From NCBI RefSeq assembly GCF_001194135.2, contig NC_068982.1, positions 192,237,158-192,301,157 of the forward strand: a DNA stretch of 64,000 nt, read 5' to 3'. The translations under genes and the position numbers were made by a program. The notes under the pieces were generated by a model that worked only from the letters and a program-made list of their open reading frames with translations, made no database searches and had not been told where the DNA came from. This stretch comes from Octopus bimaculoides (lineage: Eukaryota). The number at the start of each line of letters is the position of its first letter. Position 1 is the stretch's first letter. This document shows, in pieces, positions 936 to 62,929 of this stretch.

Positions 936-2194
936 ATGTATATATACACAGATGAGGAGGAGTTTAGGTCAAAGTAGCCCAAACTAACAGGTATGCAGTC
1001 TGAGTGCTCCAATTGACAAGCCACTAGGATCCCAGTTCAAACAAGGGATGGAGTTGTGATTGCACAAATATCCTTTTGGGAGAGAACCAGTTGTCAGTAG
1101 CTTACCTTTGAGTCAGTAGGTATAAGTTAAAGAAGAGGAAATTAATCAAGGCACGATTATGTCATTTAAATTTCTTTAGTTTAATTCAAGAGAGTTAATG
1201 CTAATACAATGTTGGTAGAATTATCTATATCTATTAATTCTACCTTCTTTGCATTAGCATTAACTCTCTAAAACTAAACTGAAGAAATATAAATGCTATA
1301 GGCAGGCCTTGATTAACTGATTTCCTCTTGTTTGATTTATATATATGTATATATATATCAACAGTTTTTTTTCTTCTGATGAACTATTACAAGGTCGGCT
1401 ATCTCTTTAACTCTGAGTAGTGGTGGAGACCTCTGACGAGAAACAAGATCATTCTGATCAAATTTTGAAATCACATGATAAGGCTTTGTCCAACTATTTC
1501 ATTTTGTGAGTTTATCTCACAAAGGAAATGCTGTTATCTGTTTGGATTGAGTGACTTAATTCTATTTAAAATCTTTCAACAAAGACATACTGCAAAGGAG
1601 ACTGGAGAATATATTTTCTTAAACGACGTACTAAAGTGCTTTAATTTGCTGAAAACTGAGTGTTGTTATTGTGTTATCAACATTATTGTAGTGTTGAAGT
1701 CTTGTTTTGATTCTAACTGGAATAATTTCATTCCTCTTTTACCAGAAATGTCCATGAAAAAGGTATTAATACCACATCATCTCATTTCTTTCACCACATT
1801 TGAATCTGTCATTTTTCCAAATAACATTCACATGTAACTCTGCTTTCTCCCTACATAAGTTGCCAGTTCTCTATCTGGTATCTTGTAGTTTCAAAGCACT
1901 GCCTGAGGATCCCTGACAAAATTGTGTAAGCTTTTTTCCACCATAGCTACAGTTTTGGCTTCAAGTTTTGATAAAGAAGAAATCTTTGTCAACTTGTAGT
2001 ATCATGTTTACAAAGTGTAGTTAATTGTTGGTCTGTGCTGCTACAATTAGACATGTTGAATTTATAAAACTATGTTGATACTAGGAACATACCATTTCAA
2101 ATGTCTGCTACGGTACTCTGCCATTCTTACCAGATTAGATGATTCTGTTCTGTTGCAGCAGCTGTAATATGTTCACTCATTCTCTCTCTTTCAG

Positions 2195-2669
2195 CACTGA
2201 ATATAATGCTGATTATGAAATCACAGCACACACACTTCTGGATGAACATAAAGCTGAGAAAGAGCAGAACCTTTGGCTTATAACCACCAAAGAACCTGAA
2301 GGAATTGCTTTGCCCCCTCGATGCTTGAAGACACCTCCTCCTCCTCCTCCTGTTGTTCCTTCTACAGAGGAAACTATTCCTGCTGTGAAAGAAGCTGAGA
2401 CCAAACCTGCAGGTATTTGTTGCTTAACCATTTCCGAGGAAGAGAGACAAGGTAAGGTTCACGACCTTCAAAACGAAGAATCGAGATTACATTCCCAATA
2501 CATTGAGGAACATACAAAAGCCCCTCGCTGTGGAAAGAAGGTTGGATTTGCAGACAATAAAGAGGACCTTCCCTGCAGTAACTGTAACCTTAGCAACAAC
2601 AGCAGTAATGACCACAACCAGGATGCTGTTGCCCCAACTACAACACCTGTTGAAGCTAGTAAAATGTAA
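2195..2669 (+). CDS. Probable terminal coding exon of an unidentified gene whose upstream exons lie mostly outside the window
   Basis: Strong acceptor cattctctctctttcag| (AG at 2193-2194, phase 2). Open frame TEYNADYEITAHTLLDEHKAEKEQNLWLITTKEPEGIALPPRCLKTPPPPPP to TAA at 2667-2669. Protein-like composition; AATAAA at 2783-2788. Confidence 0.6.
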
Positions 2670-10977: not shown

Positions 10978-11170
10978 NNNNNNNNNNNNNNNNNNNNNNN
11001 NNNNNNNNNNNNNNNNNNNNNNNNNNNNNNNNNNNNNNNNNNNNNNNNNNNNNNNNNNNNNNNNNNNNNNNNNNNNNNNNNNNNNNNNNNNNNNNNNNNN
11101 NNNNNNNNNNNNNNNNNNNNNNNNNNNNNNNNNNNNNNNNNNNNNNNNNNNNNNNNNNNNNNNNNNNNNN
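10978..11170. other. Assembly gap (further N-runs at 27197-27457, 28643-28842, 30313-30800, 61680-62176)
   Basis: Runs of N, mostly flanked by (TA)n, (GT)n or (CT)n microsatellites. Confidence 1.
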
Positions 11171-11520
11171 GGTTCTGGGTTCAGTCCCACTGCATGGCAC
11201 CTTGGGCAAGTGTCTTCTACTATAGCCTCGGGCCAACCAAAGCCTTGTGAGTGGATTTGGTAGATGGAAACTGAAAGAAGCCCGTCGTATATATGTATAT
11301 ATATATATATGTGTGTTTGTGTGTCTGTGTTTGTCCCCCCAACATCGCTTGACAACTGATGCTGGTGTGTTTACGTCCCCGTAACTTAGAGGTTTGGCAA
11401 AAGAGACCGATAGAATAAGTACTAGGCTTACAAAGAATAAGTCCTGGAGTCGATTTGCTCGACTAAAGGAGGTGCTCCAGCATGGCTGCAGTCAAATGAC
11501 TGAAACAAGTAAAAGAGTAA
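11171..11520 (+). mobile_element. tRNA-derived CORE-like SINE, 5' end lost in the gap
   Basis: B-box ggttcagtccc and CORE-like ggcaccttgggcaagtgtctt. Same family as 28460-28642. Confidence 0.75.
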
Positions 11521-21924: not shown

Positions 21925-23385
21925 GTGTAGAATGGGAAGAAATGCACTCTGGTGACATCACGCTTTGGTTCGCCCAGCTGGACACTTATTTTTCGGCCCA
22001 TGTGGTGTCTCTCGAACAGCAAGTAAGTTTATTGTACTGTGGGATGCCTACCCCTCTTGCACACTCAGTGAGAGATCTTATCACTGACCCACATCCAGAC
22101 GCAACTTATGTGTCCGTTAAATCTGAGGTTCTCCGACGGAACACCCAATCCGCCAACAGCAAATTCCAGATGCTGATGCAGGATGAGCACCTGGGAGACA
22201 AGACGCCATCTGGGTTTCTTCGTCGTTTACGTGAAGTCAGCGACACATCACCAGAGGACAATTCTCTGCTCAGAAAATTATTTTTCTCTCGGCTGCCGCT
22301 GAATGTCCAATCCATACTGGCCACAGTGGTCGACTCGAATTCGCTTGACCAGTTAGCCACCATGGTGGACAAAATTATTGAGTTCACTGTGCAGCCTGCA
22401 CCTCATCATACCTGTTCAGACACAGCAGTAGCTTCCTCTACTACTGTTAAGCCCACTCCCTTGTCACATGACGACATTTTGGAGAGAGTCGATGCGTTAG
22501 CACGTCGCATGGACACATTGTGGTGAGAGCACGCCAGCTCTCGTTGTCCTCACAGCAGAATCCGTTCTAAGTCACAGTCAACTAGGTCTACTCCAATGGG
22601 TTCTAATCTCTGCTGGTACCATGCCACCTTCAAGGAGAAAGCCCATTGTTGCATCCAACCATGTTCGTTCCAGTTGTCGGGAAACTAGTTACGGAAGATA
22701 TGAGCATGTCAGACTCTTCCCGCAAATTCTCATCTAATCGTGCATTCTTTGTTAAGGATCGTGTGCCTGGCAAAGCATTTATGGTTGACACTGGATCCAG
22801 CTGTGTTATTTGGCCTTTGCGTTTTACTTCAGACAAGCCAAAGCAATCTGCCATCAACCTGTACGCAGTGAATCTATCTATGATAAAAACTTTCAGTCCA
22901 TCATTTTTTGTCGCCCCCCCCCCACTGGTGACCAGTTCCACTCCTTTTTGGCTTCTTTCCCAGAGCTGGTGGATCCGACTTTCAAATCAAAGTCACTCAC
23001 TCAACTCGCCATTATATCACTACTTCTGAACCACCCCTTTTTTCGTGTCGACGGCGACTCGCTCCTGATTGGCTCAAAAAGGCTCATTCTGAGTTTGAAT
23101 ATATGCTTCAACTCAGCCTTATTCACCCCTCCACCAGCCCTTCGGCATCTCCTCTACATTTGGCAAGGAAAGGGGATTCAGACTTTCACCCGGTGGGGGA
23201 TTACAGACGTTTAAATGCAGTCACTGTTCCCGATCGCTATCCTATAAGGAATCTCCAGGATTTTTCTTCAAACTTGCATAATTGTACCATTTTATTCCAA
23301 GGTTGACCTCATCCAGGCTTATCATCAGATTCCAATGAACCCTGACGACATTCCCAAAACTGCCGTTATCATCCCCTTTGGAAGT
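21925..23385 (+). mobile_element. Gypsy LTR-retrotransposon relic (CsRn1/Kabuki-like): gag, CWYH finger, aspartic protease, partial RT; internally deleted and 3'-truncated
   Basis: Gag ORF 21942-22526 (LWFAQ..VRDLI..HLGDKTPSGFLRRL); CWYHATFKEKAHCCIQPCSF; FMVDTGS; SPLHL..GDYRRLNAVTVPDRYPI; AYHQIPM.PDDIPKTAVIIPFG. No LTR pair seen. Confidence 0.9.
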
Positions 23386-24900
23386 GTTGGCCCTGATATA
23401 GGATATCCCAGTCTATTATAGCCCAGGAAAGTTTACACTGTATTTTTCTATTGATTAAATGGTGTATGTGGTGAGCTAGTGATGTGAAATTGCTATTCGC
23501 TTTATATTCAAATGAGTTAAAATGGGCATAATACCTTTGTTTAAAATCGCTGCTAGAACCAATGTAGTAGCTACAGGAGTTATCTACTATGTTGTGAACA
23601 GTGCATTGGTATACGACGTTGAATCTTTTGCATTGGGCAATCTGTCCTGGATCTGTAGTTGCAGTTATCAGTTCTATGATGGCTAATTGGAGAGAGAGAG
23701 AGATGAGGCAGTGCTGGTAATGACAAGGGTTAGGGTTAGGCTTAGGTGAATCAATCATGATATTGCTCTTATTATTGCTGTCATTTCTAGTATCGATATC
23801 AATGCCAGCATTACCATTATTATTTATTATTACGTCATTATCGTTATCGGTGTTGCTGTTGTAATTATTATCATTAGTAGTAGTAGTAGTAGTATTGGTG
23901 GTAGTAGTCGTAGTAGTATTAGCAGAAATAGTAGTAGTAGCATCTTAGGTAGTAGTGTTAGTATTAGTGGTGGTAGAGGAGGTGGTAGAGTAGTGTTAGT
24001 ATTAGTGGTGGTAGAGGAGCTGTTTGTGGTAGGAGTATTAGTAATAGTCCGATTTTCAGTAATGGTAACATTGCCATTGGTGTTAGTATTAATATTGTTG
24101 CTATTCCTATCAGTAGTTGAAGTCATCATCATCATCATCATCATCATCATCGTTTAATGTCCACTTTCCATGCTGGCATGGGTTGGACGATTTGACTGGC
24201 TGCACCAGGCTCCAATCTGATCTGGCAGAGTTTCTACAGCTGGGTGCCCTTCCTAACGCCAACCCCTCCCAGAGTGTAGTGAGTGCTTTTATGGGCCAGT
24301 CAGGCGTATATGTATTATTAGTTGCAGTGGTTATAATATAATTATAATATAATTATAATATAATTAGTATCAGTGTGCCTATTAGTGTTTGCGTCCGTTT
24401 CAGGTGTGTGCCTGTTACCCTCAGAAGTGGGCATTATGTTATTTATGTTTAAGTTGTTTAAAGTAGTCGGGCCATGGGGTGTTAGATATGTTGTTGCGAT
24501 TGGTGTTGGTGTTTTCATTGTGTTGGTCTATGGTAGGGTTGTATGCATTTAGATAATAAGAGCTAAGTTAACATTTATTAGATGAGGTGATAACAGATTC
24601 TATATTTGGTGTAGATAATAATAGTAAACTGTGAACCCACAATGATATTTTAAGGGTCCCTGAAAAAATTTTGATTTAAATGTATTGCAAGAAACAGGTT
24701 TCTTTCTTTCTACAGAGTTCAAACTACACAAGGGAATATGTGAAAAACAAAATAGGAATTTTGAATGAAGTTTTTATTAAACTAGTTTTTAAATATCAAA
24801 AGGTTAGGGGATTCACAGTGTACTATTTTCTATATTTTGGGGCCATGAGCCCTTCTTCAGGACATGTGGAAAAGTGAAAAATGAATACTTTGAATTGCTG
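23386..24900 (-). mobile_element. Penelope-like element fragment (pLTR-like end, linker, GIY-YIG) interrupted by microsatellites and an RTE tail
   Basis: YYIGSSSDFKQRYYAHFNSF..TSLAHHIH (ORF 23369-23758); TLKISL..STPNIESVITS linker near 24590-24660; decayed hammerhead motif at 24826-24865. Confidence 0.65.
24125..24300 (-). mobile_element. RTE 3' UTR copy
   Basis: (CAT)n followed by cgtttaatgtccactttccatgctggcatggg. Confidence 0.85.
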
Positions 24901-28642: not shown

Positions 28643-29467
28643 NNNNNNNNNNNNNNNNNNNNNNNNNNNNNNNNNNNNNNNNNNNNNNNNNNNNNNNNNN
28701 NNNNNNNNNNNNNNNNNNNNNNNNNNNNNNNNNNNNNNNNNNNNNNNNNNNNNNNNNNNNNNNNNNNNNNNNNNNNNNNNNNNNNNNNNNNNNNNNNNNN
28801 NNNNNNNNNNNNNNNNNNNNNNNNNNNNNNNNNNNNNNNNNNCCATACTTGCATGGGTCATTTGTTGAGGCAGATTTTTCTTTTCTACAGCCAGGAGGAT
28901 GCCTTTCCTGTCACTAACTTGCATCTGTTTCCAGGCAAAGAAATATTTCCCTGAGACCAGATATGCTTTCACGAAAGATTGCAAACAACATTACATGTTT
29001 AATGGTGATTGCTTGTTTTTCACAAGCATCATGGAAATATCAAAACAAGGCTATACATAAACACAAACACACTCACATATATATACAAAAGTCTTCTTTC
29101 GGTTTCTATTCACCAAATCCACTCATAAAGTTTTGGTCAGCCTGGGACTATGGGGATAAAGCACTTGTCCAAGGTGCTGCACAGTGGAACTGTTAACCCA
29201 AAAATGGTTTGGAAGCAAGCTTCTTAAACTACGCTACCACACCTTCATGGAAAGTGGGTGTTAAATGATGCTGAGGATATATATATATACATACATATCT
29301 TAGGTTTTGGTAGGGTACAAAGATAGGGTACTTCCAGAGAAGCATTCAACCCAAGTTCTGGGCTATGAATGCTGTTGGATTCCAGACCAATACTGAAATT
29401 CTTCAAGTGTAGAAAATCCTGGTTTCATGACAATAATACCATTTTGTGGGTTTGGTGAAGAGTAAAT

Positions 29468-30150: not shown

Positions 30151-30879
30151 GCTATATCTCCATTTTCTGAATTTTCTTTATATATATATATATATATATA
30201 TAATAATTTTTTTCCAGAGGATGTGGCAACCGTTACCAATATAGCATAAGAACTTACCTGAGGAGATCATTAATTAGATTCCTTAAGGGTCGTTCTCACA
30301 GTTTATATTTATNNNNNNNNNNNNNNNNNNNNNNNNNNNNNNNNNNNNNNNNNNNNNNNNNNNNNNNNNNNNNNNNNNNNNNNNNNNNNNNNNNNNNNNN
30401 NNNNNNNNNNNNNNNNNNNNNNNNNNNNNNNNNNNNNNNNNNNNNNNNNNNNNNNNNNNNNNNNNNNNNNNNNNNNNNNNNNNNNNNNNNNNNNNNNNNN
30501 NNNNNNNNNNNNNNNNNNNNNNNNNNNNNNNNNNNNNNNNNNNNNNNNNNNNNNNNNNNNNNNNNNNNNNNNNNNNNNNNNNNNNNNNNNNNNNNNNNNN
30601 NNNNNNNNNNNNNNNNNNNNNNNNNNNNNNNNNNNNNNNNNNNNNNNNNNNNNNNNNNNNNNNNNNNNNNNNNNNNNNNNNNNNNNNNNNNNNNNNNNNN
30701 NNNNNNNNNNNNNNNNNNNNNNNNNNNNNNNNNNNNNNNNNNNNNNNNNNNNNNNNNNNNNNNNNNNNNNNNNNNNNNNNNNNNNNNNNNNNNNNNNNNN
30801 ATCCCCACCCAATACATTCTGTTTTTGAGATCTTCCCTACCAAATAACACATTAACTGAAATCTTAAAAACAAACTAAC

Positions 30880-33081: not shown

Positions 33082-36000
33082 TTATGGAGGCAAAGACACT
33101 GCACATTGAAGTAAATTAGCAGCATTTTCACTGCCTGTTAAACACTTCTTCAGTTGTGGTAAAACATTATCTGCAACTAATAACATGTCATCTGTCTCAA
33201 CATGAGGTAGACTATCGTTTAACTTTAATAAAAAACTACTTTGCGACAAGGAACATTTCTGTACTGCAATATTGTGATAGAGAAGTTTGTCAAACACTGT
33301 GGAAGATATCCATGAAGGATTGACATCACTCAGAAGAAAATATCTCTCTCCATTGTGCTCAATAAATCTTACAACTCTATTACTTAGCTGTGTCATTCCT
33401 CCCAAAATGAATTCTTTGTCTGGAGATGGTGAGCTGATAGACACAGCCTTGTTCTGATCCTTATCAGAATCAGTTTGTCCGTTGGGTTGTTCACTGTTTA
33501 GTTCATAATTTGACAGGGGAACAGAATCACAGAGACCTGGCAAAGAAGAGGAAGTTTGTATACCATCAGATGGAGATTTGAAAACCCCATTTGAGCAATT
33601 TAGACTTAATGATGACCCCAAAACATTTGTTTCCAAATCTACTGACGATGGACATTTGTCTGGAATTGGATGCTCTGTAGAATCTTTATGTGACAGACAA
33701 GTTTTTAACGTACCATAAAGTGTTAAAGAATTATGTAAGTCAGTCTCCATATCTGCATTATATTTAAAACTTTCTGCTGACGGTTCAAATATGCCTGACA
33801 CTGGCCGCTTCGGTGGTTTACGATATAAATTGCAGCATTCTAGTTTTGTCAATGAACCTGGCTCTGCTGGAGATTGTTGGCAGAGACAAGAGCATTTATA
33901 ACCCGTTTTATGTAAAGATTCGACCGGATTCTCCCTGGCAGACACAAATGTATTTTGTTCAGTTTTTTCTCCCAAACCTTCAGACCATTTAGGATCAAAA
34001 ACACCCGTATTATCTGGATCCCAGTCTTGGACACATTTTACAAGCTTACATTCTTTAAAACTATAGAAGAAATGATAGAGGAGTTCTGCATCAGACAATA
34101 ACATGATACCAAGTGGCGTCGCTCGATTACCATTGAAGACCAGACTAGATTCTAAAAGGTACTTCAAGGCAAAAGACCTCATATAATGTGGCAGCTCTAA
34201 GTAAGGTAAACTATAGTCTCTATATTTAGTCCGATAAAACACAGTTTGATTTTTGCCAAGAAAACATTTTTGAACAACTTCTCGGACAATAACATATTTT
34301 TTTACATTAATGACTACACAGAGGAGTTTGTGACCATGGAACTTGACAAATTTATGAATGATAGAATGAGGAGGAGTATTGCTCACTTGAGAATAGCAAC
34401 TCCCGCTGAAAGCATGAGTCACACATCCAGTGAAATTAAGGTCTGTTTGATTTTGCTTGTCATGAAATGAACTGGGATCTTCATGATGCTGTATCAAATG
34501 TGGAGAAGTGAAAACACGGCCATATCTGACAGGACAACTCATTAAAATTCTATTATGCAGGGTTTGTAAATCATATTTTAATGGCAGGGGCAGTTGAAAG
34601 GGGTTTCCTGGTGAAAGCTGATTTTCAACAAATAATGTTTCAATGTGGTTTTCTCTTATATTTTCACAAGACTTGACCTCCTGAAACGACTTTTTATTTA
34701 CACATTTAGTTCTTTTCTTAAAACTAGTGCAGAATTTCTTTAGCAAACGACTCTTCCTTACTTGTTTGGACCATTTGAATTTCCTCGGTTGGGGTTTAGC
34801 AACTAAAGACAATGAATTTAAGATTCCTTGGCTTTTAACATCTTTGTGCTTTTCATTTTTTTTGTCTGAGTATAAAGTCTTGGGAATTTTATCAGGGTAC
34901 AGAGCTTTGAAGTCTGTGATTGTTTTGCATAATTTCACTTCACAGGAAGGAAGAGGAAACAAAGGATTGCACTGATTGTTTTTCGTGGTTGGTTTTGAAT
35001 TACTTTTAACAGGTTTCCGTAATGGTTCACCAACAGCAGAAGAGTCACAAATCCTTTCACTGATGAAACCACAGCTACTGACAGACACTATTTCACCATT
35101 CTTTGTTTTCGTGACAACCTCTTTGCAAGATTTGTCCAATAAATCTGATGGAACTACCACAGATGTCTTGGCTGACTTCTCTTTACTCAGAATCTTGTCA
35201 TTGTCTGTTTGTACTGGTTCTTCTGGTCTGGACATCACAGAGGATTTGCAACCATCAGAAATGTCAACCGATGTTTCATTCTTGGCCAATTCCATTGAAC
35301 AACTTTCTGTAACAGGACACACAATGACATCAGCATGAACAGTATCTTTTAATAAATGCTCAGATTTGGTCAAATTTGACAGATTATCACTAACAGGTTC
35401 TTCATAGTCAGTTACTATGGCAACAATATTTATATCCCCATTCTCACTGACCTCCAAGCACGGAGCTTTGTTCAAGTCTTCCAATTCTTCAATAACACAG
35501 ATTTTCTTGGAAAGATTTAAGAAATTCATTTCAGATTGATGAACCACAGTCACTTGGTCCTGTTTCTCATTATCTTTGACTTGTTTCTCATTATTAATCA
35601 ATTGAAAGATATCACCTGCAGCAACATTATCGAGTTTCTTTGGAGCAATTTCGGTTAAGCAACTACCAACAACAATTTCATTTGGTTGCTGTTCCTGCTG
35701 TTGTTGTTGTTGTTGTTGTTCTGGTGGTGGTGGTGGTGGTGGTGGTGGTGGTAACTGTTGTAGTTGTGGGGACTGCTTTTGTTGTGGTGGCTGTGGTTGT
35801 TGTAGTTGGGGTGACTGTTGTTGTTGTTGTTGTTCTTGCTGTAGTTTTGTTTTTAACTCTTGCAATTCTTCTTGTGTTTGTTGTTTTTGAAGCTGTCTTA
35901 AGTTTGGTTGTTGTTGTTGTTGTGACAGTTGAGATCCCTCCTCCTCCTCCTCCTCCCCTAGTTGTGATGAAACAACAGCAGCAATGATGCCTGGTGATGT

Positions 36001-39000
36001 TCGGGCTGTCCAAGCATCTTCTTTCACATCTTTCAGCACAATTAGTTTATCACTGGTTTTCTCTTCAACAGGAAGTTTAGGGTTTGTTTTGTGACCACCA
36101 TCAGCACCACCACCACAACCCTCACCATCATCATCACCATCATCATCACCACTATCATCACCATCAGTATTGTTGTTGTTGTTGTTGTAAGTTTTGAAAT
36201 GTTCAACAGAGTTTGGTGCTTCAGTTTCAGATCTGGGACAGAAACTTTCATCCAAAACATGTTTATCCTTTTGGAAACTATTGAATTGGTTCTTCTGTTT
36301 CCAATATTTGGAATTCCCAGCCGTTCGAGCACAGTCTTTCTCCTTATTTTCTATTCCTTCCTTCTTATTCTCCTCCGTTCCCATTGTCAGTCTAGCCTCA
36401 GATTTCTCGATCCCTACTTGACAGTTCTTGGTGATTACACTGTTCTTTCCAGTCTCGTTACTTAAGGAAACAAACTTTTTGGAAGTTGCCAACTCATTTT
36501 CGCATGCTAATAGAGCCTTCTCTAACAAACTTTGACCTTTTCTGCGCTGACGGCCGTCATTGGTTGATGGTTTGACAGGACAATATGGAGCATAGACAGC
36601 AGACGCTTCTGAGAGGGTCTTGAAATCTGATTTTATAGAGATTTCATCATTGGTAAAATTAGTAGATGGACTTCGGTCAGGACTTGGTAACAAACACACA
36701 GTGGAATTAATGCTACTCTCATCACTGGAAACCAATTGAGATAAATCTTCTTTTACAGTTGATTCCACATCAGATTTCTGCTGGTCATCCTGAAGTTTAA
36801 CTGGTGATTTACATGATTCAAATTCCTTTTGTTTGATTTTCACCCAAGAAGAATTGGTAATTTCAACATCTGGATTAGCATCGGTTAATAATTTTCTGGT
36901 ATTAATAGATTTGTCTAATGATGAATTAGTGGAATTTGAATTCTCTTTTAAAACAGAAACTTTTGACAATGGAGAAAATGGTTGTATTCCTGGACTGACC
37001 TTATCTTCCATAATGGTAAAAACAATTTCTTTCTCCAGAGTTCTTTCTCCAAAAGAGTCGTTGTTTTCTGTCGCTTTGGAATTGATGCTTGTGTTTTTCA
37101 AAGAGTCCATAGAACTTTCAGCAGTACTTAGAGTGTCGACTGATTGCCTTGAATGAATCACAGATTTCGGTGCCATCGTTTCGCCAGCTTGAACTCCGTC
37201 AGAATCATCAGTGTCATCCAGTGTGACACACTTTTCATTGTTAACACTTTTCCCATGACGGTTAATTGTCCTGCGTTCAACTTGTCTCTCCTCAGGCCAA
37301 CACTTCCACATTTTGTCGTTTGTCTCCACTGGACTTTGATTTGAGCTCGAATTAGACAAAGAATGTAAAATATCTACGATATCACAGTATTCTGGAGCAT
37401 TGTTGCTGCTGTTGGTTTTGTCAAAAAATTTATCAGTTTGGTTAGCACCTAGCGATTTATTAGTTATAGAGGCAGGGATATAGTTCTTGGCAGAAGATTC
37501 ATAGTTGTTGCCTAATAATTTGTTCATTGACTCTGGAGGCCAACAGGAAGTATCTTCATCCAGTTCCAAGTTCTCCCGCTTGCGTGGCTCGTATTTTTTA
37601 CGTTTTGATCTACTTTCCAGCTTTAATCTGTAGTCCTGAACAATGTCCGTCGATAAAAGATTCTCTTTTTGATTGTCTTCAAGGCTGACATTTATAATGT
37701 CTGGCAACCTACGCTTTTTTGTGACGTTACTAGCACCAGTTGCTGCTATCAGGTCTTTTGATCTGTGAGGAACACCAGACAAAGATAAAGAGTAGGAACT
37801 GGTGATCACCAAGTCACAAGGAGTTTCGTCGTTTTGGTGGTTGGCTTTTTCAACAACAGAAGATCGGGGTCGCGCAAGAGCAGAGGGAGCAGAGACAGAA
37901 GGAGCGGAAAGATTGGGAGCAGAGACTGTGGGAGGGGCAGAAATAGTAGGAGTAGTAACAATAAGAGCAGGAGGAGGAAGAGATGGTGGTGGCGGTGGTG
38001 GTGGTGGTGGTGGTGGAGGTGGTGATGGAGAAGAGTCAGTGTCTCTGGACAAATCTATTACATCTTCGATTATATGATGATTATGTTTTGAAAATGAGGA
38101 ATTCAATGCCATGATATGGTGTTTCTTGGGAAGATGACTAAGGGTAGACTGACTACTAGACGTCACCTGAATATGGTTCTGTTGGTTAGAATTAGTAGTT
38201 AAAATATCAGAAATCACAGATTCTGAACTAGTTGTCTTTGAGCTCTTATTGAGTTTTGATTCATTTTGATGTTTTTTCATGAGCCTTTTGAGAAAATATT
38301 CAGCAAAGTTATTTGAAGAATTTGAAGAAGTGACAGAATCTGGAAGACAGTTGGAAGATTTTGAAGAATTTGAAGTTGACAGTTTGGTACAATTAAAATT
38401 GTTTGTAATAATAGCAGGATTTTCAAAGTTATTTGGTTTGTTTGGCACTGTACTTTCAACCCCACCTAAGTTCCCAGTTTTTTCATTGTCCTTTGTAAGT
38501 TTCTCTTTTTTCGTCTGTGGTGGTGGTGGGCTTTTTTCAGGCATTTTGTACCAAGACCTGCGTGTCACTGACCCGCCACACACCGATGTCGTTGTTTCAC
38601 ATTTTTGTACAACAGTTTTCTCAATGAAATTAAGGTCTGCATGGATGTGATTGCCAACTGGATGCAGACAGTCAATGTTTTCTAACTGAGTGGGTGGCAT
38701 GACCACAGGCAGCTCTGGTAGTGGAATGTCATTTGGATAGCGTGTATACCAGCCCCGAAGGTTGGCAGGGGTAGTAGGGTGTACAGAACCAAGAATAGGG
38801 TCTACTAATGAGCTGTGGGGTTGTGTTACAGATGGTAAATTAAAGGAAGGTGGAGGGACACGGTTAGTGACTCTACAGGGATATGACTGTTGAGGTGAAA
38901 GAACATTACCATTTGTAACAGAATGGTTTAACCATCCACCAGGAGGAGGCCAACCAGTCCAGGGGGGCGCTCGTGGTGACCAATTGATGTTATTGTAACA

Positions 39001-39162
39001 TGTACGATCTGGCACAAATGGAGGGGCCAGACCAGCATAGTAACCCATTGTTTGATGGTAATGAGAAATTTGAGTTGTGAATACATTCTCCTCTAACTGT
39101 AACCGGCTGTTACTGCGTCTTCGCTCTTTCTTAGAATGAGGTTCTTCATTTCTCGAAGACAT
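33082..39162 (-). CDS. 2026-aa putative nuclear protein encoded by one exon; low-complexity body and two C-terminal Ski/Sno/Dach-like domains
   Basis: 6,081-nt stop-free ORF in AT-rich DNA; in-frame stops upstream of the ATG; acceptor 61 nt upstream; basic NLS-like clusters. Domain similarity judged by manual alignment only. Confidence 0.93.
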   Translation of the reverse strand: MSSRNEEPHSKKERRRSNSRLQLEENVFTTQISHYHQTMGYYAGLAPPFVPDRTCYNNINWSPRAPPWTGWPPPGGWLNHSVTNGNVLSPQQSYPCRVTNRVPPPSFNLPSVTQPHSSLVDPILGSVHPTTPANLRGWYTRYPNDIPLPELPVVMPPTQLENIDCLHPVGNHIHADLNFIEKTVVQKCETTTSVCGGSVTRRSWYKMPEKSPPPPQTKKEKLTKDNEKTGNLGGVESTVPNKPNNFENPAIITNNFNCTKLSTSNSSKSSNCLPDSVTSSNSSNNFAEYFLKRLMKKHQNESKLNKSSKTTSSESVISDILTTNSNQQNHIQVTSSSQSTLSHLPKKHHIMALNSSFSKHNHHIIEDVIDLSRDTDSSPSPPPPPPPPPPPPPSLPPPALIVTTPTISAPPTVSAPNLSAPSVSAPSALARPRSSVVEKANHQNDETPCDLVITSSYSLSLSGVPHRSKDLIAATGASNVTKKRRLPDIINVSLEDNQKENLLSTDIVQDYRLKLESRSKRKKYEPRKRENLELDEDTSCWPPESMNKLLGNNYESSAKNYIPASITNKSLGANQTDKFFDKTNSSNNAPEYCDIVDILHSLSNSSSNQSPVETNDKMWKCWPEERQVERRTINRHGKSVNNEKCVTLDDTDDSDGVQAGETMAPKSVIHSRQSVDTLSTAESSMDSLKNTSINSKATENNDSFGERTLEKEIVFTIMEDKVSPGIQPFSPLSKVSVLKENSNSTNSSLDKSINTRKLLTDANPDVEITNSSWVKIKQKEFESCKSPVKLQDDQQKSDVESTVKEDLSQLVSSDESSINSTVCLLPSPDRSPSTNFTNDEISIKSDFKTLSEASAVYAPYCPVKPSTNDGRQRRKGQSLLEKALLACENELATSKKFVSLSNETGKNSVITKNCQVGIEKSEARLTMGTEENKKEGIENKEKDCARTAGNSKYWKQKNQFNSFQKDKHVLDESFCPRSETEAPNSVEHFKTYNNNNNNTDGDDSGDDDGDDDGEGCGGGADGGHKTNPKLPVEEKTSDKLIVLKDVKEDAWTARTSPGIIAAVVSSQLGEEEEEEGSQLSQQQQQPNLRQLQKQQTQEELQELKTKLQQEQQQQQQSPQLQQPQPPQQKQSPQLQQLPPPPPPPPPPEQQQQQQQQEQQPNEIVVGSCLTEIAPKKLDNVAAGDIFQLINNEKQVKDNEKQDQVTVVHQSEMNFLNLSKKICVIEELEDLNKAPCLEVSENGDINIVAIVTDYEEPVSDNLSNLTKSEHLLKDTVHADVIVCPVTESCSMELAKNETSVDISDGCKSSVMSRPEEPVQTDNDKILSKEKSAKTSVVVPSDLLDKSCKEVVTKTKNGEIVSVSSCGFISERICDSSAVGEPLRKPVKSNSKPTTKNNQCNPLFPLPSCEVKLCKTITDFKALYPDKIPKTLYSDKKNEKHKDVKSQGILNSLSLVAKPQPRKFKWSKQVRKSRLLKKFCTSFKKRTKCVNKKSFQEVKSCENIRENHIETLFVENQLSPGNPFQLPLPLKYDLQTLHNRILMSCPVRYGRVFTSPHLIQHHEDPSSFHDKQNQTDLNFTGCVTHAFSGSCYSQVSNTPPHSIIHKFVKFHGHKLLCVVINVKKYVIVREVVQKCFLGKNQTVFYRTKYRDYSLPYLELPHYMRSFALKYLLESSLVFNGNRATPLGIMLLSDAELLYHFFYSFKECKLVKCVQDWDPDNTGVFDPKWSEGLGEKTEQNTFVSARENPVESLHKTGYKCSCLCQQSPAEPGSLTKLECCNLYRKPPKRPVSGIFEPSAESFKYNADMETDLHNSLTLYGTLKTCLSHKDSTEHPIPDKCPSSVDLETNVLGSSLSLNCSNGVFKSPSDGIQTSSSLPGLCDSVPLSNYELNSEQPNGQTDSDKDQNKAVSISSPSPDKEFILGGMTQLSNRVVRFIEHNGERYFLLSDVNPSWISSTVFDKLLYHNIAVQKCSLSQSSFLLKLNDSLPHVETDDMLLVADNVLPQLKKCLTGSENAANLLQCAVSLPP

Positions 39163-52344: not shown

Positions 52345-54030
52345 ACCACCAGATAAGGGATTGGGGATCTGGTCCCTTATCTGGTGGTCAATGCAGAAAC
52401 AAGGGATGGATGAGTGATTGGTGAGAGCTGTACAAGCCATGTACAGGGATGCTGTCAGTAAGGTGAGGGTTGGCAATGAGTATAGTCAAGAATTCCAGGT
52501 AGAAGTAGGGGTTCAACAAGGATCAGTCCTCTGCCCCCTTTTATTCATCAAAGTCCTCCAGGCAATAACAGAGGAATTCAAGACGGGCTGCTCCTGGGAA
52601 CTCTTCTATGCTGATGACCTTGCTCTAACAGTTGAGTCACTACCAGAACTACAAGAAAATTTTCAGGCGTGGAAGCAAGGTCTAGAATCAAAGGGCTTTA
52701 GAGTGAATCTAGCAAAACCAAAGTCCTAGTAAGTAGGAAAGCAGACAAATCACAAATCCTTTCAAGTAGATGGCCCTGCTCAATCTGTAGGAAAGGTGTA
52801 AGTAGAAATTCCATAAGATGCACCAAGTGTAAGCTTTGGACACATACAAGGTGCAGCAATATCAAAGGAAGGTTAACTGGGAAAATAGTTTTTGTGTGTG
52901 GCAGATGCACTGGGGCAATAAACATCAAAGATGTACAGAAAACAGATTCCATCAGATGCCAGGGGAAAAACTAGAAATAGTTGATAGCTTCTGTTACCTA
53001 GGTGACCAAGTCTGTAGCGGGGGTGGTTGCACTGAAAGTGTAGCAACTAGAGTAAGAATAGCCTGGGCAAAGTTCAGGGAGTTCCTACCTCTGCTAGCAA
53101 CTAAAGGCCTCTTGCTCAGGATGAAAGGTAGACTGTATGATGCATGTGTGCGAACTGCCATGCTACACGGCAGTGAAACATGGGCCGTGACTGTGGAGGA
53201 CATGCGTAGGCTGGAAAGAAATGAAGCTGGCGTGATCCGCTGGATGTATAATGTCAGTGTGCACACACGAGAGAGTGTAAGTGCCCTGAGAGAAAAGTTG
53301 GGTATAAGAAGCATCGGATGTGGCATGCAAGAGAGACATTTGTGTTGGTATGGTCATGTACTATGGATGGACGCGGAGAGCTGTGTGAAGAAGTGCTACT
53401 CCCAAACAGTGGAAGGAATCCGGGGTAGAGGTAGACCCAGGAAGACATGGGATGAGGTGGTGAAGCATGACCTTCAAATTTTGGGCCTCAGAGAGGCAAT
53501 GACGATAGACCAAGATGTCTGGAGATATGCTGTGACTGCAAAGACCCGGCAAATAAAGTGAGTTTACAGCTGTAACCTACACCAGTGTTGCATAACCAGC
53601 CCCAGCCCACTCAAAAGTACCTTGAATCGTAGGGCAACATGCTGTGCTTGAAGAGACCTATTGAGTCAAGAACATCAACATCAAATGGAAATTGTAGTTG
53701 TGATCCCTCTGCTGGTGGCACATAAAAAGCACCATCCAAACATGGCAGATGCCAGCACCGCCTTGACTGGCTTCCGTGCCAGTGACACGTAAAAAGCACC
53801 AACTGATCGTGGTCATTGCCAGCCTCCTCTGGCCCCTGTGCTGATGGCACGTAAAAAGCACCTACTACACTCTGAGTGGTTGGCGTTAGGAAGGGCATCC
53901 AGCTGTAGAAACATTGCCAGATCAGACTGGAGCCTGGTGCAGCCTCCTGGCTTCCCAGACCCCAGTCAAACCATCCAACCCATGCCAGCATGGAAAATGG
54001 ACATTAAATGATGATGATGATGATGATGAA
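52345..54030 (+). mobile_element. RTE LINE 3' part (RT through 3' UTR and (GAT)n tail); longest copy in the window, frameshifted
   Basis: GVQQGSVLCPLLF, LFYADDLAL, VDSFCYLG, AMLHGSETWAVT, RGRPRKTWDEVVKHDL; stop at 53561, then UTR. Confidence 0.92.
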
Positions 54031-55014: not shown

Positions 55015-55984
55015 GCTTTTGAACTCTGTTTATAATGGTAAATGTCTGATGTAATGAGGGTAACAGTGTGTCACCAAACTTAATAGTAGTAGTAGTAGTA
55101 GTAGTAGAAGTAGTAGCAGCAGCAGTAGCAGCAGCTAGTTAGATTGATGTCACAGTTGCAGAGAATAGGCAGAGCAATTCTGACAACTGCAGACTTTACT
55201 GATTGCTTCACTCTGCAGGTAGACTTGTTGCAGTCCATTGCTGCACAATACACAGTAAAACATCTGCAAGTCTGTCGCAATTGCATTGATAATTCTTTCA
55301 GCAAGTTTACTTGACCAATCACTGATTCCACCACCACCACAAGAAAACCATACCAATGCAGCTCTTCCTACTTTTCCACACAAAATCACTGATTATACAT
55401 CTGGTTTAACACACACACACACACACGTCTACTCAACACACAGGAACTAGTGGTGCTCTGTTACACTGTGTTCTCTCCACTGCATCGTTTGCTGACATTA
55501 CAATGGCCTCTGCTCTTCTGAAACTGCTGGCCCCTACCCAAACCCATTCAATACCCCCTTCTCCTTTTCTCTTCTCTCCATATTGTCTACGTCTCTATTC
55601 CTGGTCCCATACTGACTACACATCAGAGACCTCGTCATTGTGAAACTTGTGTAAGGGCTACAAAACTGTTCCCCCCCTTCATCCCACTATCTTCCTAGGA
55701 CTCCACAATTATTCTTGTTCCTAAGACTACAAAGTACTAGAAAGGAAATTCCATCACTGACACCACCACCACCACCCCCCACACACACACACTTCTTTGC
55801 CTTTCTCTCACCAAATAATACTAAGATGATTCTCCAATGTTCTAATGTTCCTGAAACCAGACAATTAGTCTTCTATTCAAAAGAATATCCCAGCACTTAT
55901 TCTAACCTTACTCTAAGGAAGCTGAAAATGAGCCTAAGCCCTAGCCTCTCTCTAATCAGCAGAGATTTAATCAAGATTTGTCAA

Positions 55985-56870
55985 GAGTACTGGACTGAAT
56001 CACTACCAGAACTAGAGAAAAAAAGAATTTCATGTCTGGAATCAAAAGGCCTTAGAATTAATTTAGTGAACAGCAAAGCCTTAGCAAGTAGGAAAACAGA
56101 CAAATCACAAATCCTTTTGGGGAGATGGCCCTGCTTGATATGTAGAAAAAGTGTAGGTAGAAACTCTATAAGATGTTCCCAGTGTAAGCTATGGACACAT
56201 AAAAGGTGCAGCAATATCAAAGGCAGGTCTTTGTGTGTGGCAGATGTGTAGTTCACAATAAACACTAGGAATGTACAAAGAATAGACTTTGTCAAATGCC
56301 CAGGGGGATATTCAGAAGTGGTAGATAGCTTCTGTTACCTTGGTGACAATGTCAGCAATGGAGGAGGATGCTCTGAGAGCATAGCTCTCGAATAAGAACA
56401 GGCTGGGCAAAATTCAGAGAGCTGCTACTTTTGTTGGTAACGAAGTGTCTTTCCCTCAGAATGAAAGGCAGATTGTATGATGTGCAAACAGCCATGTTAT
56501 ATGGCAGTGAAATATGGGCTGTGACTACAGGGGCCATAATGAAGCCAGTATGCTTCACTAGATGTGCAATATCAGCATACAAGTGTCTTAAAAGAAAAAT
56601 TGAAGATAAGAGGCATCAGATGTGGTGTACAAGAGAGAAGACTGTGTTGGTATAGCTGTGTAATGCATATGGATGAGGACAGATGCATAAAGATTCTAAT
56701 CTCTAACTGTGGAGGATGAGGTGGTGAAATATGCTACAGATGGATGCCCTTCCTAATGCCAACCACTCCATGAGTGTAGTGGGTGCTTTTTATGTACCAC
56801 TGACATGGGAGCCAGTCAGGCAGCACTGGCATCGGCCACAACTACAATTTCCATTTGATTGTGATTTGAT
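55985..56870 (+). mobile_element. Decayed RTE RT C-terminal fragment ending in an inverted UTR piece (56735-56870)
   Basis: Homologous to 52630-53430. Confidence 0.8.
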
Positions 56871-61215: not shown

Positions 61216-62929
61216 CTAACAATTATAGAATGGGCCTGTAGAAGAGAAAGATATGGAAAGATATAGTGAAGGCTGATCACAGAATGCTGAAGCTCAGAAA
61301 TAGCAAGAGTTCATGGTTTGTAGCAAGAAGTAGCAGAAAAAATCCATCAAATAAGGGGAAAAAATGATGATGATATTTAATTAATTCAATAAGTAAAATA
61401 TATGTAGGAGCTTAACTAAAAAGACATCAAGCAATAAAGACCATGAGCCTCAAAACAAAAGACACGGTTAAAACTTTGATCTTTCTGCTCATTCTCAATA
61501 TCTTCACATTCTCCAACATCATTTTCCCATTTTCAGAAAATTCATAAAATATCAGAATCAGACACTTTTTCTTTCTTAATTTTGCACATCATTTCTGTTT
61601 AATACTGTTGATGCAATTCTAGAGTGTTCGTTGTAATCTTTTTCATTCCTCTCTATCATCCCCTCTCTCTCTCTCTCTCNNNNNNNNNNNNNNNNNNNNN
61701 NNNNNNNNNNNNNNNNNNNNNNNNNNNNNNNNNNNNNNNNNNNNNNNNNNNNNNNNNNNNNNNNNNNNNNNNNNNNNNNNNNNNNNNNNNNNNNNNNNNN
61801 NNNNNNNNNNNNNNNNNNNNNNNNNNNNNNNNNNNNNNNNNNNNNNNNNNNNNNNNNNNNNNNNNNNNNNNNNNNNNNNNNNNNNNNNNNNNNNNNNNNN
61901 NNNNNNNNNNNNNNNNNNNNNNNNNNNNNNNNNNNNNNNNNNNNNNNNNNNNNNNNNNNNNNNNNNNNNNNNNNNNNNNNNNNNNNNNNNNNNNNNNNNN
62001 NNNNNNNNNNNNNNNNNNNNNNNNNNNNNNNNNNNNNNNNNNNNNNNNNNNNNNNNNNNNNNNNNNNNNNNNNNNNNNNNNNNNNNNNNNNNNNNNNNNN
62101 NNNNNNNNNNNNNNNNNNNNNNNNNNNNNNNNNNNNNNNNNNNNNNNNNNNNNNNNNNNNNNNNNNNNNNNNNNNNTTGACATTTGTTGTTGCTGTTGTT
62201 GTTGTTGTCTTACTTTAATGGAATAGGCTGTTTTATAACGTGAAGGTTATTTCAAACCTAATATGACTTTATATCATGATCTTTAGTTGAAATTACCAAA
62301 AGAATGTAAAACTTAAAAGTTAATACAGTAGATATTTAGACAAATGAAACAGAGACAGGAGATTAGGGGCTGATGTGGAGTTGAACTGGTAGAAGAACAG
62401 TTGTAGAAAAGGGGCTGAAGGAGTGATAAAAAAAAAAGTGAAACAAATGTTGAAAAAAAAAATGGAAATGTGGAAAATTATGGGATGGGAGGGATATAGT
62501 GTTAAACTGCTTACAGAGGTGTATGGAAGAAATGTCAGATAGAACTTCTTATTATATCGTCATCGTCATCATTGATTTGACTCTGGTTTGTTCTTATTCC
62601 TGGTAGAATTTATGTGGGTACTACCTGTAACCTTAGGTATCCACAAGCTTTCAATTGTCTTTTGTGTGCTTAAAACATACACCCCACCTCCCACCCCGAT
62701 AATCTTTCCTAAGAGGCAAACTTTTCTGTTTAAGCTCTACAGGGCATTCTATTCCAAACTCCTTCAGCCATTTGTCAATAACTTTGTTTATGATTATTAT
62801 TATTGTTTTACTTCTCAGAACACTCAGTCTTGTTTGCTCTGGTAGATTCTATGAGAGCAGACAGCAGCCTGTTGTCAGACACCTCACAGGGTCTCTTTCC
62901 ACACATTATAAACTTTGAGACTTAGTTGT

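Follow-up and report, generated by a model that had tools for sequence, protein, structure and literature searches.

An octopus protein segment read as a Ski/Dach domain

What kind of domain, if any, is encoded at positions 34048-34353 of the 64,000-nucleotide stretch of Octopus bimaculoides DNA analysed here (the window)? The initial annotation had read this segment by eye as a close pattern match to the Ski/Dach homology domain (DHD). The plus-strand frame across the segment is riddled with stops, which rules out a plus-strand feature. The minus strand translates as KFVKFHGHKLLCVVINVKKYVIVREVVQKCF...GIMLLSDAELLYHFFYSFKEC (also given as KFVKFHGHKLLCVVINVKKYVIVREVVQKCF...PLGIMLLSDAELLYHFFYSFKEC), and the quoted peptides are present there exactly as given. 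The segment corresponds to residues ~1604-1705 of an uninterrupted minus-strand open reading frame (ORF) of 2026 amino acids (aa) plus stop, lying within DNA of 38% GC. The O. bimaculoides assembly GCA_001194135.2 (CM046602.1) has a gene call with the identical product, without a Pfam family. As shown below, the Ski/Dach interpretation of the segment, which we call Domain 1, is supported at the level of predicted fold together with a weak sequence signal. We consider it likely that Domain 1 is a Ski/Sno/Dachshund DHD (an alpha/beta module derived from the winged helix) that has diverged strongly, and that it is set in a long, mostly disordered protein that has a second, C-terminal DHD-like domain and acts as a nuclear regulator.

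The 2026-aa protein is largely of low complexity, rich in S, K, P, N, E, and Q, with serine making up 12% of residues. A polypyrimidine tract followed by AG was noted by eye ~60 nt upstream of the ATG, which suggests that the coding part is one exon preceded by a 5′ untranslated exon; the orthologue of another cephalopod is likewise one continuous ORF. In mid-protein, aa ~1050-1170 (~35640..36020, minus strand) hold long polyQ, polyP, and polyE tracts and an N/D/G-rich run. This is the least conserved region even in comparison with O. sinensis (70-88% identity), and the strand opposite it yields spurious poly-V/T ORFs.

A conserved domain in a molluscan protein family

When the last 492 aa were searched exhaustively with phmmer against 1.84 billion representative proteins, 14 true homologues of 250-2050 aa each were recovered, along with one spurious sushi-repeat match. 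Named homologues come from Octopus sinensis, O. vulgaris, Argopecten, Mizuhopecten, Magallana/Crassostrea, Mytilus, Haliotis, Potamilus, and Biomphalaria; by these species names, all detected members are molluscs, and the family spans cephalopods, bivalves, and gastropods. They are annotated as "uncharacterized" or are mislabelled (e.g., "FK506-binding protein 5-like," "serine-rich adhesin for platelets"). The O. sinensis orthologue (XP_036356612, "uncharacterized protein LOC118762189") is 95% identical across the queried C-terminal 492 aa. A literature search returned nothing on this mollusc family, and homologue searches of another protein collection with the C-terminal 472 aa and with a Domain 1 profile gave no match, an uninformative result in that known members there were also missed; the Ski_Sno family hits listed from that collection were all 165 aa or shorter.

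The best-matching stretch is the 34048-34353 segment in 13 of the 14 homologues, the exception (P0004) being a fragment that covers the C-terminal Domain 2; another incomplete homologue (P0009) stops shortly past Domain 1. Domain 1, Domain 2, and a short WYKxP motif are common to all 12 full-length homologues. The alignment of Domain 1 from 13 orthologues (A1) has the consensus F-x-FHG-x-KLLC ... Y-x-x-MRELL-x-KCF ... KERDL-x-IPY-x-ELP ... YL, followed in its C-terminal part by H-x-GII-x3-DA-x-RLYHFF-x-G-x-K-x-C-x3-C. Conserved residues specific to this family are F12, H13, G14, L18, E32, F38, K50, L61, Y72, A96, and Y100 (A1 numbering).

In comparison with the orthologue of another cephalopod, no other 100 residues of the protein are as well conserved as Domain 1, whose two 50-aa windows are 90% and 76% identical within surroundings of 20-46% identity. 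The nonsynonymous divergence (dN) of Domain 1 from that orthologue is the lowest in the protein, at 0.15 (middle and linker regions, 0.7-1.0), and different codons are used at 53 of 91 identical residues. Synonymous divergence (dS) is saturated in almost all regions, so that dN and the counts of differing codons are the usable measures; low dN combined with different codons indicates purifying selection on the protein sequence with silent sites saturated. The Domain 1 segment is a real protein domain under selective constraint.

Conservation is not confined to the two domains. The N-terminal region (aa 1-300; 38263..39162, minus strand) is the second most conserved between the two cephalopod orthologues (54-80% identity) and gave no Pfam match. 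Each full-length member, from octopus to Biomphalaria, carries a single W-[YC]-[KRQ]-x-P motif in its N-terminal third; the motif is embedded in otherwise unalignable sequence, is usually preceded by G/R-R/Q, and is likely to be a short linear interaction motif.

Predicted fold of Domain 1

AlphaFold2 (AF2), run on alignment A1 without templates, modelled Domain 1 with a mean pLDDT of 85.9 and a pTM of 0.80, and all five models had a pLDDT of 83-86. The predicted elements are b1 (5-12), b2 (15-22), b3 (25-29), a1 (30-37), a2 (43-53), b4 (59-60), a3 (63-75), b5 (89-92), and a4 (93-104). Their modelled order, b1-b2-b3-a1-a2-b4-a3-b5-a4, is that of the DHD, which in SnoN, Ski, and Dach has five strands, four helices, and a wing (b4-b5) into which a3 is inserted (PMC2944819).

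In a Foldseek comparison with 350,542 PDB chains, the 12 best matches to the Domain 1 model are all chains of 1l8r (Dachshund), 3eq5 (SnoN), and 1sbx (Ski), with prob 1.00, target-normalised TM of 0.70-0.75, and rmsd of 2.5-3.8 Å over 94-104 columns; the 13th match falls to E = 0.47 and prob 0.14. The Ski/Dach-type fold that the initial annotation had anticipated is thus the one predicted. We think it very likely that Domain 1 shares the DHD fold by homology.

A weak sequence signal linking Domain 1 to Ski and Dach

Aligned by hhalign with the sequences of three solved domains (1sbx, 3eq5, and 1l8r), A1 is co-linear over 83 columns (P = 6e-4, probability 28%). With 15 nonredundant PF02437 sequences, a shallow and Dach-dominated template alignment, it gives a score of 28.3 over 85 co-linear columns (P = 2.2e-4, probability 45%). 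None of 150 column shuffles of the Ski/Dach alignment reaches 28.3 (mean, 11.7; sd, 2.4; maximum, 19.5), which places Domain 1 ~7 sd above the shuffles, and the reversed alignment scores 12.6. A score beyond all shuffles and the reversed control points to a sequence signal that is genuine but weak.

The register places FHG on L-E/R-G, GIMLLSDAELLY on GLITKTDAERL, and, more generally, GI(M/I)xxxDAxxLY on G/K-L-I-xxx-D-A/F-E-x-L. Two features of the family are thereby present. The glycine of the b1-b2 turn, G14 of FHG, aligns with the invariant G of L-E/R-G, and the b5-a4 motif, hiGII..-D-A-x-R-L-Y, aligns with CGLITKTDAERL / CKLISRKDFETLY (family form, [CG]-[GK]-L-I-x3-D-x-E-x-L). From the turn Gly to the DA.RL Asp there are 82 residues in Domain 1 versus 74 in Ski, with the excess lying chiefly in the alpha3-beta5 loop.

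Measured against these results, the initial annotation was right about the resemblance and overstated its closeness. The Dach and Ski strings that it quoted agree with the PDB sequences (1l8r reads CKMVDLRGAKVASFTVEGCELICLPQAFDLFL...CKLISRKDFETLYN; 1sbx reads ...CGLITKTDAERLCN), the resemblance is beyond chance, hhalign reproduces the proposed register, and the spacing of ~100 aa holds. Identity to the solved DHDs is 12-17%, however, with no Ski_Sno match, so that "close" is too strong. On the profile comparison that it had suggested as a check, the score stands far above shuffled controls, but the hhalign probability, obtained with small Ski/Dach alignments, is only 28-45%. Taken together, these analyses support reading Domain 1 as a DHD by its predicted fold, and the accompanying sequence signal is real, though weak.

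A second predicted DHD at the C-terminus

The Domain 2 alignment (A2) has the consensus GG-x-A-x-L ... FRF ... G-x-KF-x-P-x-x-DL ... C-S-x-x-E-x-x-FLN-x-LE-x-x-LP. Its AF2 model (pLDDT 85.7, pTM 0.76) has the same order of elements as Domain 1, and the top PDB matches by Foldseek are SnoN, Dach, and Ski (prob 1.00, mostly TM 0.65-0.71). Alignment of Domain 2 with Ski/Dach by hhalign is marginal (P = 2.4e-3 to 8e-3), and 1 of 150 shuffles reaches its score. At the site aligned with the CLPQ motif of Ski, SnoN, and Dach, the sequence is P-[FLY]-x-D-L in most orthologues and L-L-x-D-[VI] in cephalopods (octopus, LLSDV). Of the 13 orthologues, 11 have an acidic Domain 2.

The models point to Domain 2 as a second DHD-like domain whose fold is confidently predicted, and as modelled both domains match known DHD structures in the PDB far better than other folds. 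Neither BLASTP nor hhalign (A1 against A2) found significant similarity between them, which rules out a recent duplication as their origin and suggests that the two DHDs diverged long ago. We know of no characterised protein with two DHDs.

A cysteine-containing tail and a candidate metal site

Helix a4 of Domain 1 is followed by a tail with a short extra strand at model residues 115-117. Two cysteines there, C109 and C114 (A1 numbering; C1705 and C1710 of the protein), are present in 12 of 13 orthologues, and this C-x(3-5)-C tail is without counterpart in the Ski/SnoN/Dach sequences compared. The FHG turn contributes an invariant histidine (H13; H1609) and strand b2 a conserved cysteine (C19; C1615). 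In the Potamilus orthologue C19, C109, and C114 are all missing together, and H13 is kept. These four residues might form a lineage-specific metal site, absent from Ski/SnoN/Dach.

Charge and a proposed nuclear role

By charge counted from sequence, every one of the 13 orthologues has a basic Domain 1 (net charge, +5 to +12; pI, 8.9-9.8). The a2/b4 segment of the domain carries a charge of +1 to +5, compared with +2 in DACH1 and −2 in Ski/SnoN, and the whole-domain pI is 9.1 for DACH1 and ~5 for Ski/SnoN. The positive face of DACHbox-N is its proposed DNA-binding site; DNA binding is not attributed to the Ski/SnoN DHDs, which bind N-CoR (PMC2944819). Elsewhere in the octopus protein there are NLS-like basic clusters, KKRR at aa 482 and KRKKYEPRKR at aa 520-529, the second of which looks like a nuclear localisation signal (NLS).

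We propose that the protein is probably a nuclear regulator. The NLS-like clusters, the polyQ/polyP and acidic tracts, the 12% serine content, and the charge of the domains are indirect hints of this. It would act as a transcription or chromatin co-regulator, a role ascribed to it because all characterised DHD proteins have it. In basic Domain 1, a DACH-like positive face (helix a2, strand b4, and the a3-b5 loop) would contact DNA or chromatin; acidic Domain 2 would offer a docking surface for partner proteins, like the Ski/SnoN DHD; and the disordered remainder, with its polyQ, polyP, and acidic runs, NLS-like clusters, and WYKxP motif, would serve as a scaffold. DNA or chromatin binding by Domain 1 in the DACH manner is the more tentative part of this scheme, and we would put it a little below an even chance. 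Possible, if on balance doubtful, is a broader reading, in which the family is an unrecognised mollusc-restricted (or lophotrochozoan) class of DHD transcription or chromatin factors, with Domain 1 as a DNA/nucleosome reader, perhaps stabilised by a His/Cys-bound metal, and Domain 2 as a Ski-like docking module. If true, it would widen the DHD superfamily beyond Pfam Ski_Sno. A chain with two DHDs could bridge DNA and partner proteins.

Points against the assignment and alternative explanations

Several observations weigh against a divergent DHD in a nuclear regulator. Even at E ≤ 10, Pfam Ski_Sno (PF02437) matched neither the whole protein nor isolated Domain 1 nor the corresponding domain of any of the 13 orthologues, and a profile hidden Markov model (HMM) of Domain 1 (A1) searched against all PDB sequences found no Ski/Dach chain. 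The hhalign probabilities lie below the usual HHpred standard of >90%. The CLPQ motif at the b3/a1 junction, invariant in the Ski, SnoN, and Dach sequences compared, is not kept in Domain 1, where the aligned residues are [IVL]-[VM]-[RK]-E (VREV in octopus, MREL in most orthologues); nor are the residues of the Ski/SnoN groove (SnoN Leu167, Pro168, Gln169, Leu171, Asn172, and Ser173). The fold is predicted from a 13-sequence alignment and not solved, and AlphaFold, trained on the PDB, may be biased toward a known fold. The charges come from counts on the sequence, and that this protein enters the nucleus and binds DNA and partners is inferred.

Pfam scans of the whole protein, both domains, and the 13 orthologue domains gave scattered sub-threshold noise only, and profile HMMs of both domains found chance-level matches only among PDB sequences (TTK kinase, bZIP, PP2A B56). 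By gathering score Domain 1 is not a PF02437 member, and the genuine family members retrieved all carry PF02437; Domain 1 lies outside the Ski_Sno family as Pfam defines it.

One alternative accepts the DHD fold and makes both domains purely protein-protein modules without DNA contact, for example bridging a co-repressor complex to a transcription factor. The characterised Ski/SnoN DHD is a precedent for it, as a binder of N-CoR/Skip to which DNA binding is not ascribed (PMC2944819); the Foldseek scores for SnoN/Ski are on a par with those for Dach, and the hhalign alignment retains the Ski-type G-[LI]-I-x3-D-A-x-R-L. We nevertheless judge it unlikely: the basic character of Domain 1 in every orthologue, a2/b4 included, is DACH-like and unlike the acidic Ski/SnoN domains, and the Ski/SnoN groove residues (LPQ.LNS etc.) are not kept.

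The DHD likeness could also be an artefact of chance similarity and AlphaFold bias, the conserved block being a novel fold or a segment that folds upon binding. That no standard sequence method is significant, that the hhalign probability stays <50%, and that the multiple-sequence alignment holds 13 sequences only would all fit. Yet the five AF2 models agree in pLDDT, Domain 1 matches every DHD chain in the hit list and nothing else, Domain 2, unrelated in sequence, converges on the same predicted fold, and the hhalign score stands well clear of its shuffled controls, which together make an artefact very improbable.

We give still less credence to Domain 1 as a Bro-N/KilA-N/phage antirepressor-N DNA-binding domain, perhaps derived from a virus or mobile element and only superficially Ski/Dach-like. 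Such domains are beta-hairpin-plus-helices modules of similar size; the gene is single-exon; Foldseek against predicted viral structures returns giant-virus and Bro-N/antirepressor-N proteins with prob up to 1.00; APSES proteins (1mb1, 4ux5) appear low in the Domain 1 PDB list; and Pfam P22_AR_N has a sub-threshold match (E 0.17, 12.5 bits) on the octopus b1-b3 region. That match occurs in only 1 of 13 orthologues, octopus, and falls far short of the 30.7-bit cut-off for Pfam membership, so there is no consistent sequence signal across orthologues. The viral structural matches (TM 0.4-0.55, rmsd 4-7 Å) are far poorer than those to Ski/SnoN/Dach (TM 0.70-0.75, rmsd ~3 Å), the APSES matches have prob < 0.2, Pfam detects neither transposon nor viral domains in the whole protein, and the gene is conserved vertically across mollusc classes. 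A transposon or viral ORF is ruled out by the absence of such domains and by vertical conservation, and an APSES/KilA-N assignment by the weak structural scores.

The DHD-like models also have weaker matches to other structures: the baculovirus CpGV Orf22 N-terminal domain (PDB 4ye7, rank 10 for Domain 2), the winged helix of SMARCB1, proteins of giant viruses, and Bro-N/antirepressor-N domains. The modelled likeness hints that the DHD is distantly akin in structure to these viral DNA-binding modules.

Features of the gene and the rest of the window

The features of the gene are collected in Table 1; the coordinates of both domains were confirmed by translation.

Table 1. Features of the 2026-aa protein gene, in window coordinates
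Feature	Position	Strand	Basis
Single ORF, 2026 aa	33082..39162	-	Called as gene; orthologue in Octopus sinensis
Domain 1, basic, predicted DHD fold, aa 1601-1700	34063..34362	-	AF2, Foldseek, hhalign, conservation
Domain 1 C-terminal extension, aa 1701-1713, with C-x(3-5)-C pair (C1705, C1710)	34024..34062	-	Alignment, AF2
Domain 2, second predicted DHD fold, mostly acidic, C-terminal, aa 1920-2009	33136..33405	-	AF2, Foldseek
WYKMP, copy of W-[YC]-[KRQ]-x-P motif, aa 204-208	38539..38553	-	Family comparison
KRKKYEPRKR basic cluster, NLS-like, aa 520-529	37576..37605	-	Kept in other cephalopod orthologue

The window is eukaryotic in character, with assembly gaps, microsatellites, retroelement fragments, and 32-46% GC. 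Retroelement remnants lie at 21942..23214 (plus strand), where an ORF with DUF7041 (E 2.6e-9, above the cut-off) is followed by ORFs with an aspartic-protease-like motif seen by eye (FMVDTGSS), and at 23369..23758 (minus strand), where an ORF has a weak GIY-YIG match (E 1.5e-3, below the cut-off). A 241-aa ORF at 52836..53561 (plus strand), ending ...RGRGRPRKTWDEVV..., resembles by eye a LINE/RT-associated C-terminal region and has no Pfam match; a 178-aa ORF at 55715..56251 (plus strand) has a weak PHD/C1-type zinc-finger match (E ~1e-3, below the cut-off). Both are probably transposon debris. At 2139..2669 (plus strand), the first ~50 residues of an ORF match the C-terminal end of a CFAP161-like domain (E 1.6e-5; 24.9 bits against a 27-bit cut-off), and this ORF may represent the final coding exon of an adjacent cilia/flagella-associated gene. 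Runs of N marking assembly gaps at ~11000-11300, ~28650-28900, ~30310-30810, and ~61680-62180 create artificial X-filled ORFs, and dense (CA)n, (TC)n, and (TATC)-type microsatellites occur around 16.8-18.3 kb (GC skew, 0.43), 31.2-31.8 kb, and 60 kb.

Comparison with known DHD proteins

Proteins with a DHD (Ski, SnoN, Dach, Fussel/SKOR, SKIDA1) act as key repressors in organ determination and TGF-beta/BMP signalling, and all those known to us have one DHD, recognised by Pfam. A divergent DHD in this protein would assign a fold and a testable function to a conserved family that genome annotations have left "uncharacterized" or mislabelled, would mean that strongly diverged DHDs evade the current family model, and would give developmental biologists who study cephalopods and bivalves a candidate lineage-specific regulator. 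The segment also provides a useful annotation and validates motif recognition by eye.

Among known systems, the Dachshund DachBox-N (1l8r; DACH1/2, Drosophila dac) is alike in predicted fold and order of elements (Foldseek E = 1e-3, prob 1.00, TM 0.70, rmsd 2.7-2.9 Å). Like it, Domain 1 is basic (pI ~9) with a positive a2/b4 segment, has a Gly in the b1-b2 turn, and has an aromatic residue (LY) after the D-x-E/A-x-L motif in helix a4. Unlike it, Domain 1 is only 13-14% identical, lacks CLPQ, has longer a1-a2 and a3-b5 loops (the a1-a2 loop is also basic in bivalves) and an extra C-x4-C tail, and lies near the C-terminus of a 2000-aa protein, whereas the Dachshund DHD is near the N-terminus; Pfam finds no DachBox-C, and the chain is predicted to contain a second DHD. 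A canonical SKI/SNO/DAC-domain protein (P0108) is separately present in O. bimaculoides, and the 2026-aa protein is therefore not the octopus Dach orthologue.

The Ski/SnoN DHD (1sbx, 3eq5; PF02437) has the same predicted fold as Domain 1 (TM 0.70-0.75), and the b5-a4 motif G-[LI]-I-x3-D-A-x-R-L is near-literal in both (GIIHVNDAKRLY in scallops and GIMLLSDAELLY in octopus; GLITKTDAERLC in Ski/SnoN). Domain 2 is acidic, as is the Ski/SnoN DHD. The differences are the lack of a Pfam match, the partner-groove residues that are not kept, a basic Domain 1 as opposed to acidic Ski/SnoN DHDs, and, by Pfam, no SAND-like Smad4-binding domain (c-SKI_SMAD_bind), in place of which a short C-x(3-5)-C tail follows Domain 1.

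SKIDA1 and SKOR/Fussel are, like the octopus protein, long, largely disordered nuclear proteins built around a DHD. Compared by description, they differ in having a single, Pfam-recognised DHD near the N-terminus. SKIDA1 is reported to bind PRC2 (PMC12820645). Set beside these systems, the predicted two-DHD architecture is new, and Domain 1 would be a highly divergent variant of a known domain rather than part of a new kind of molecular system.

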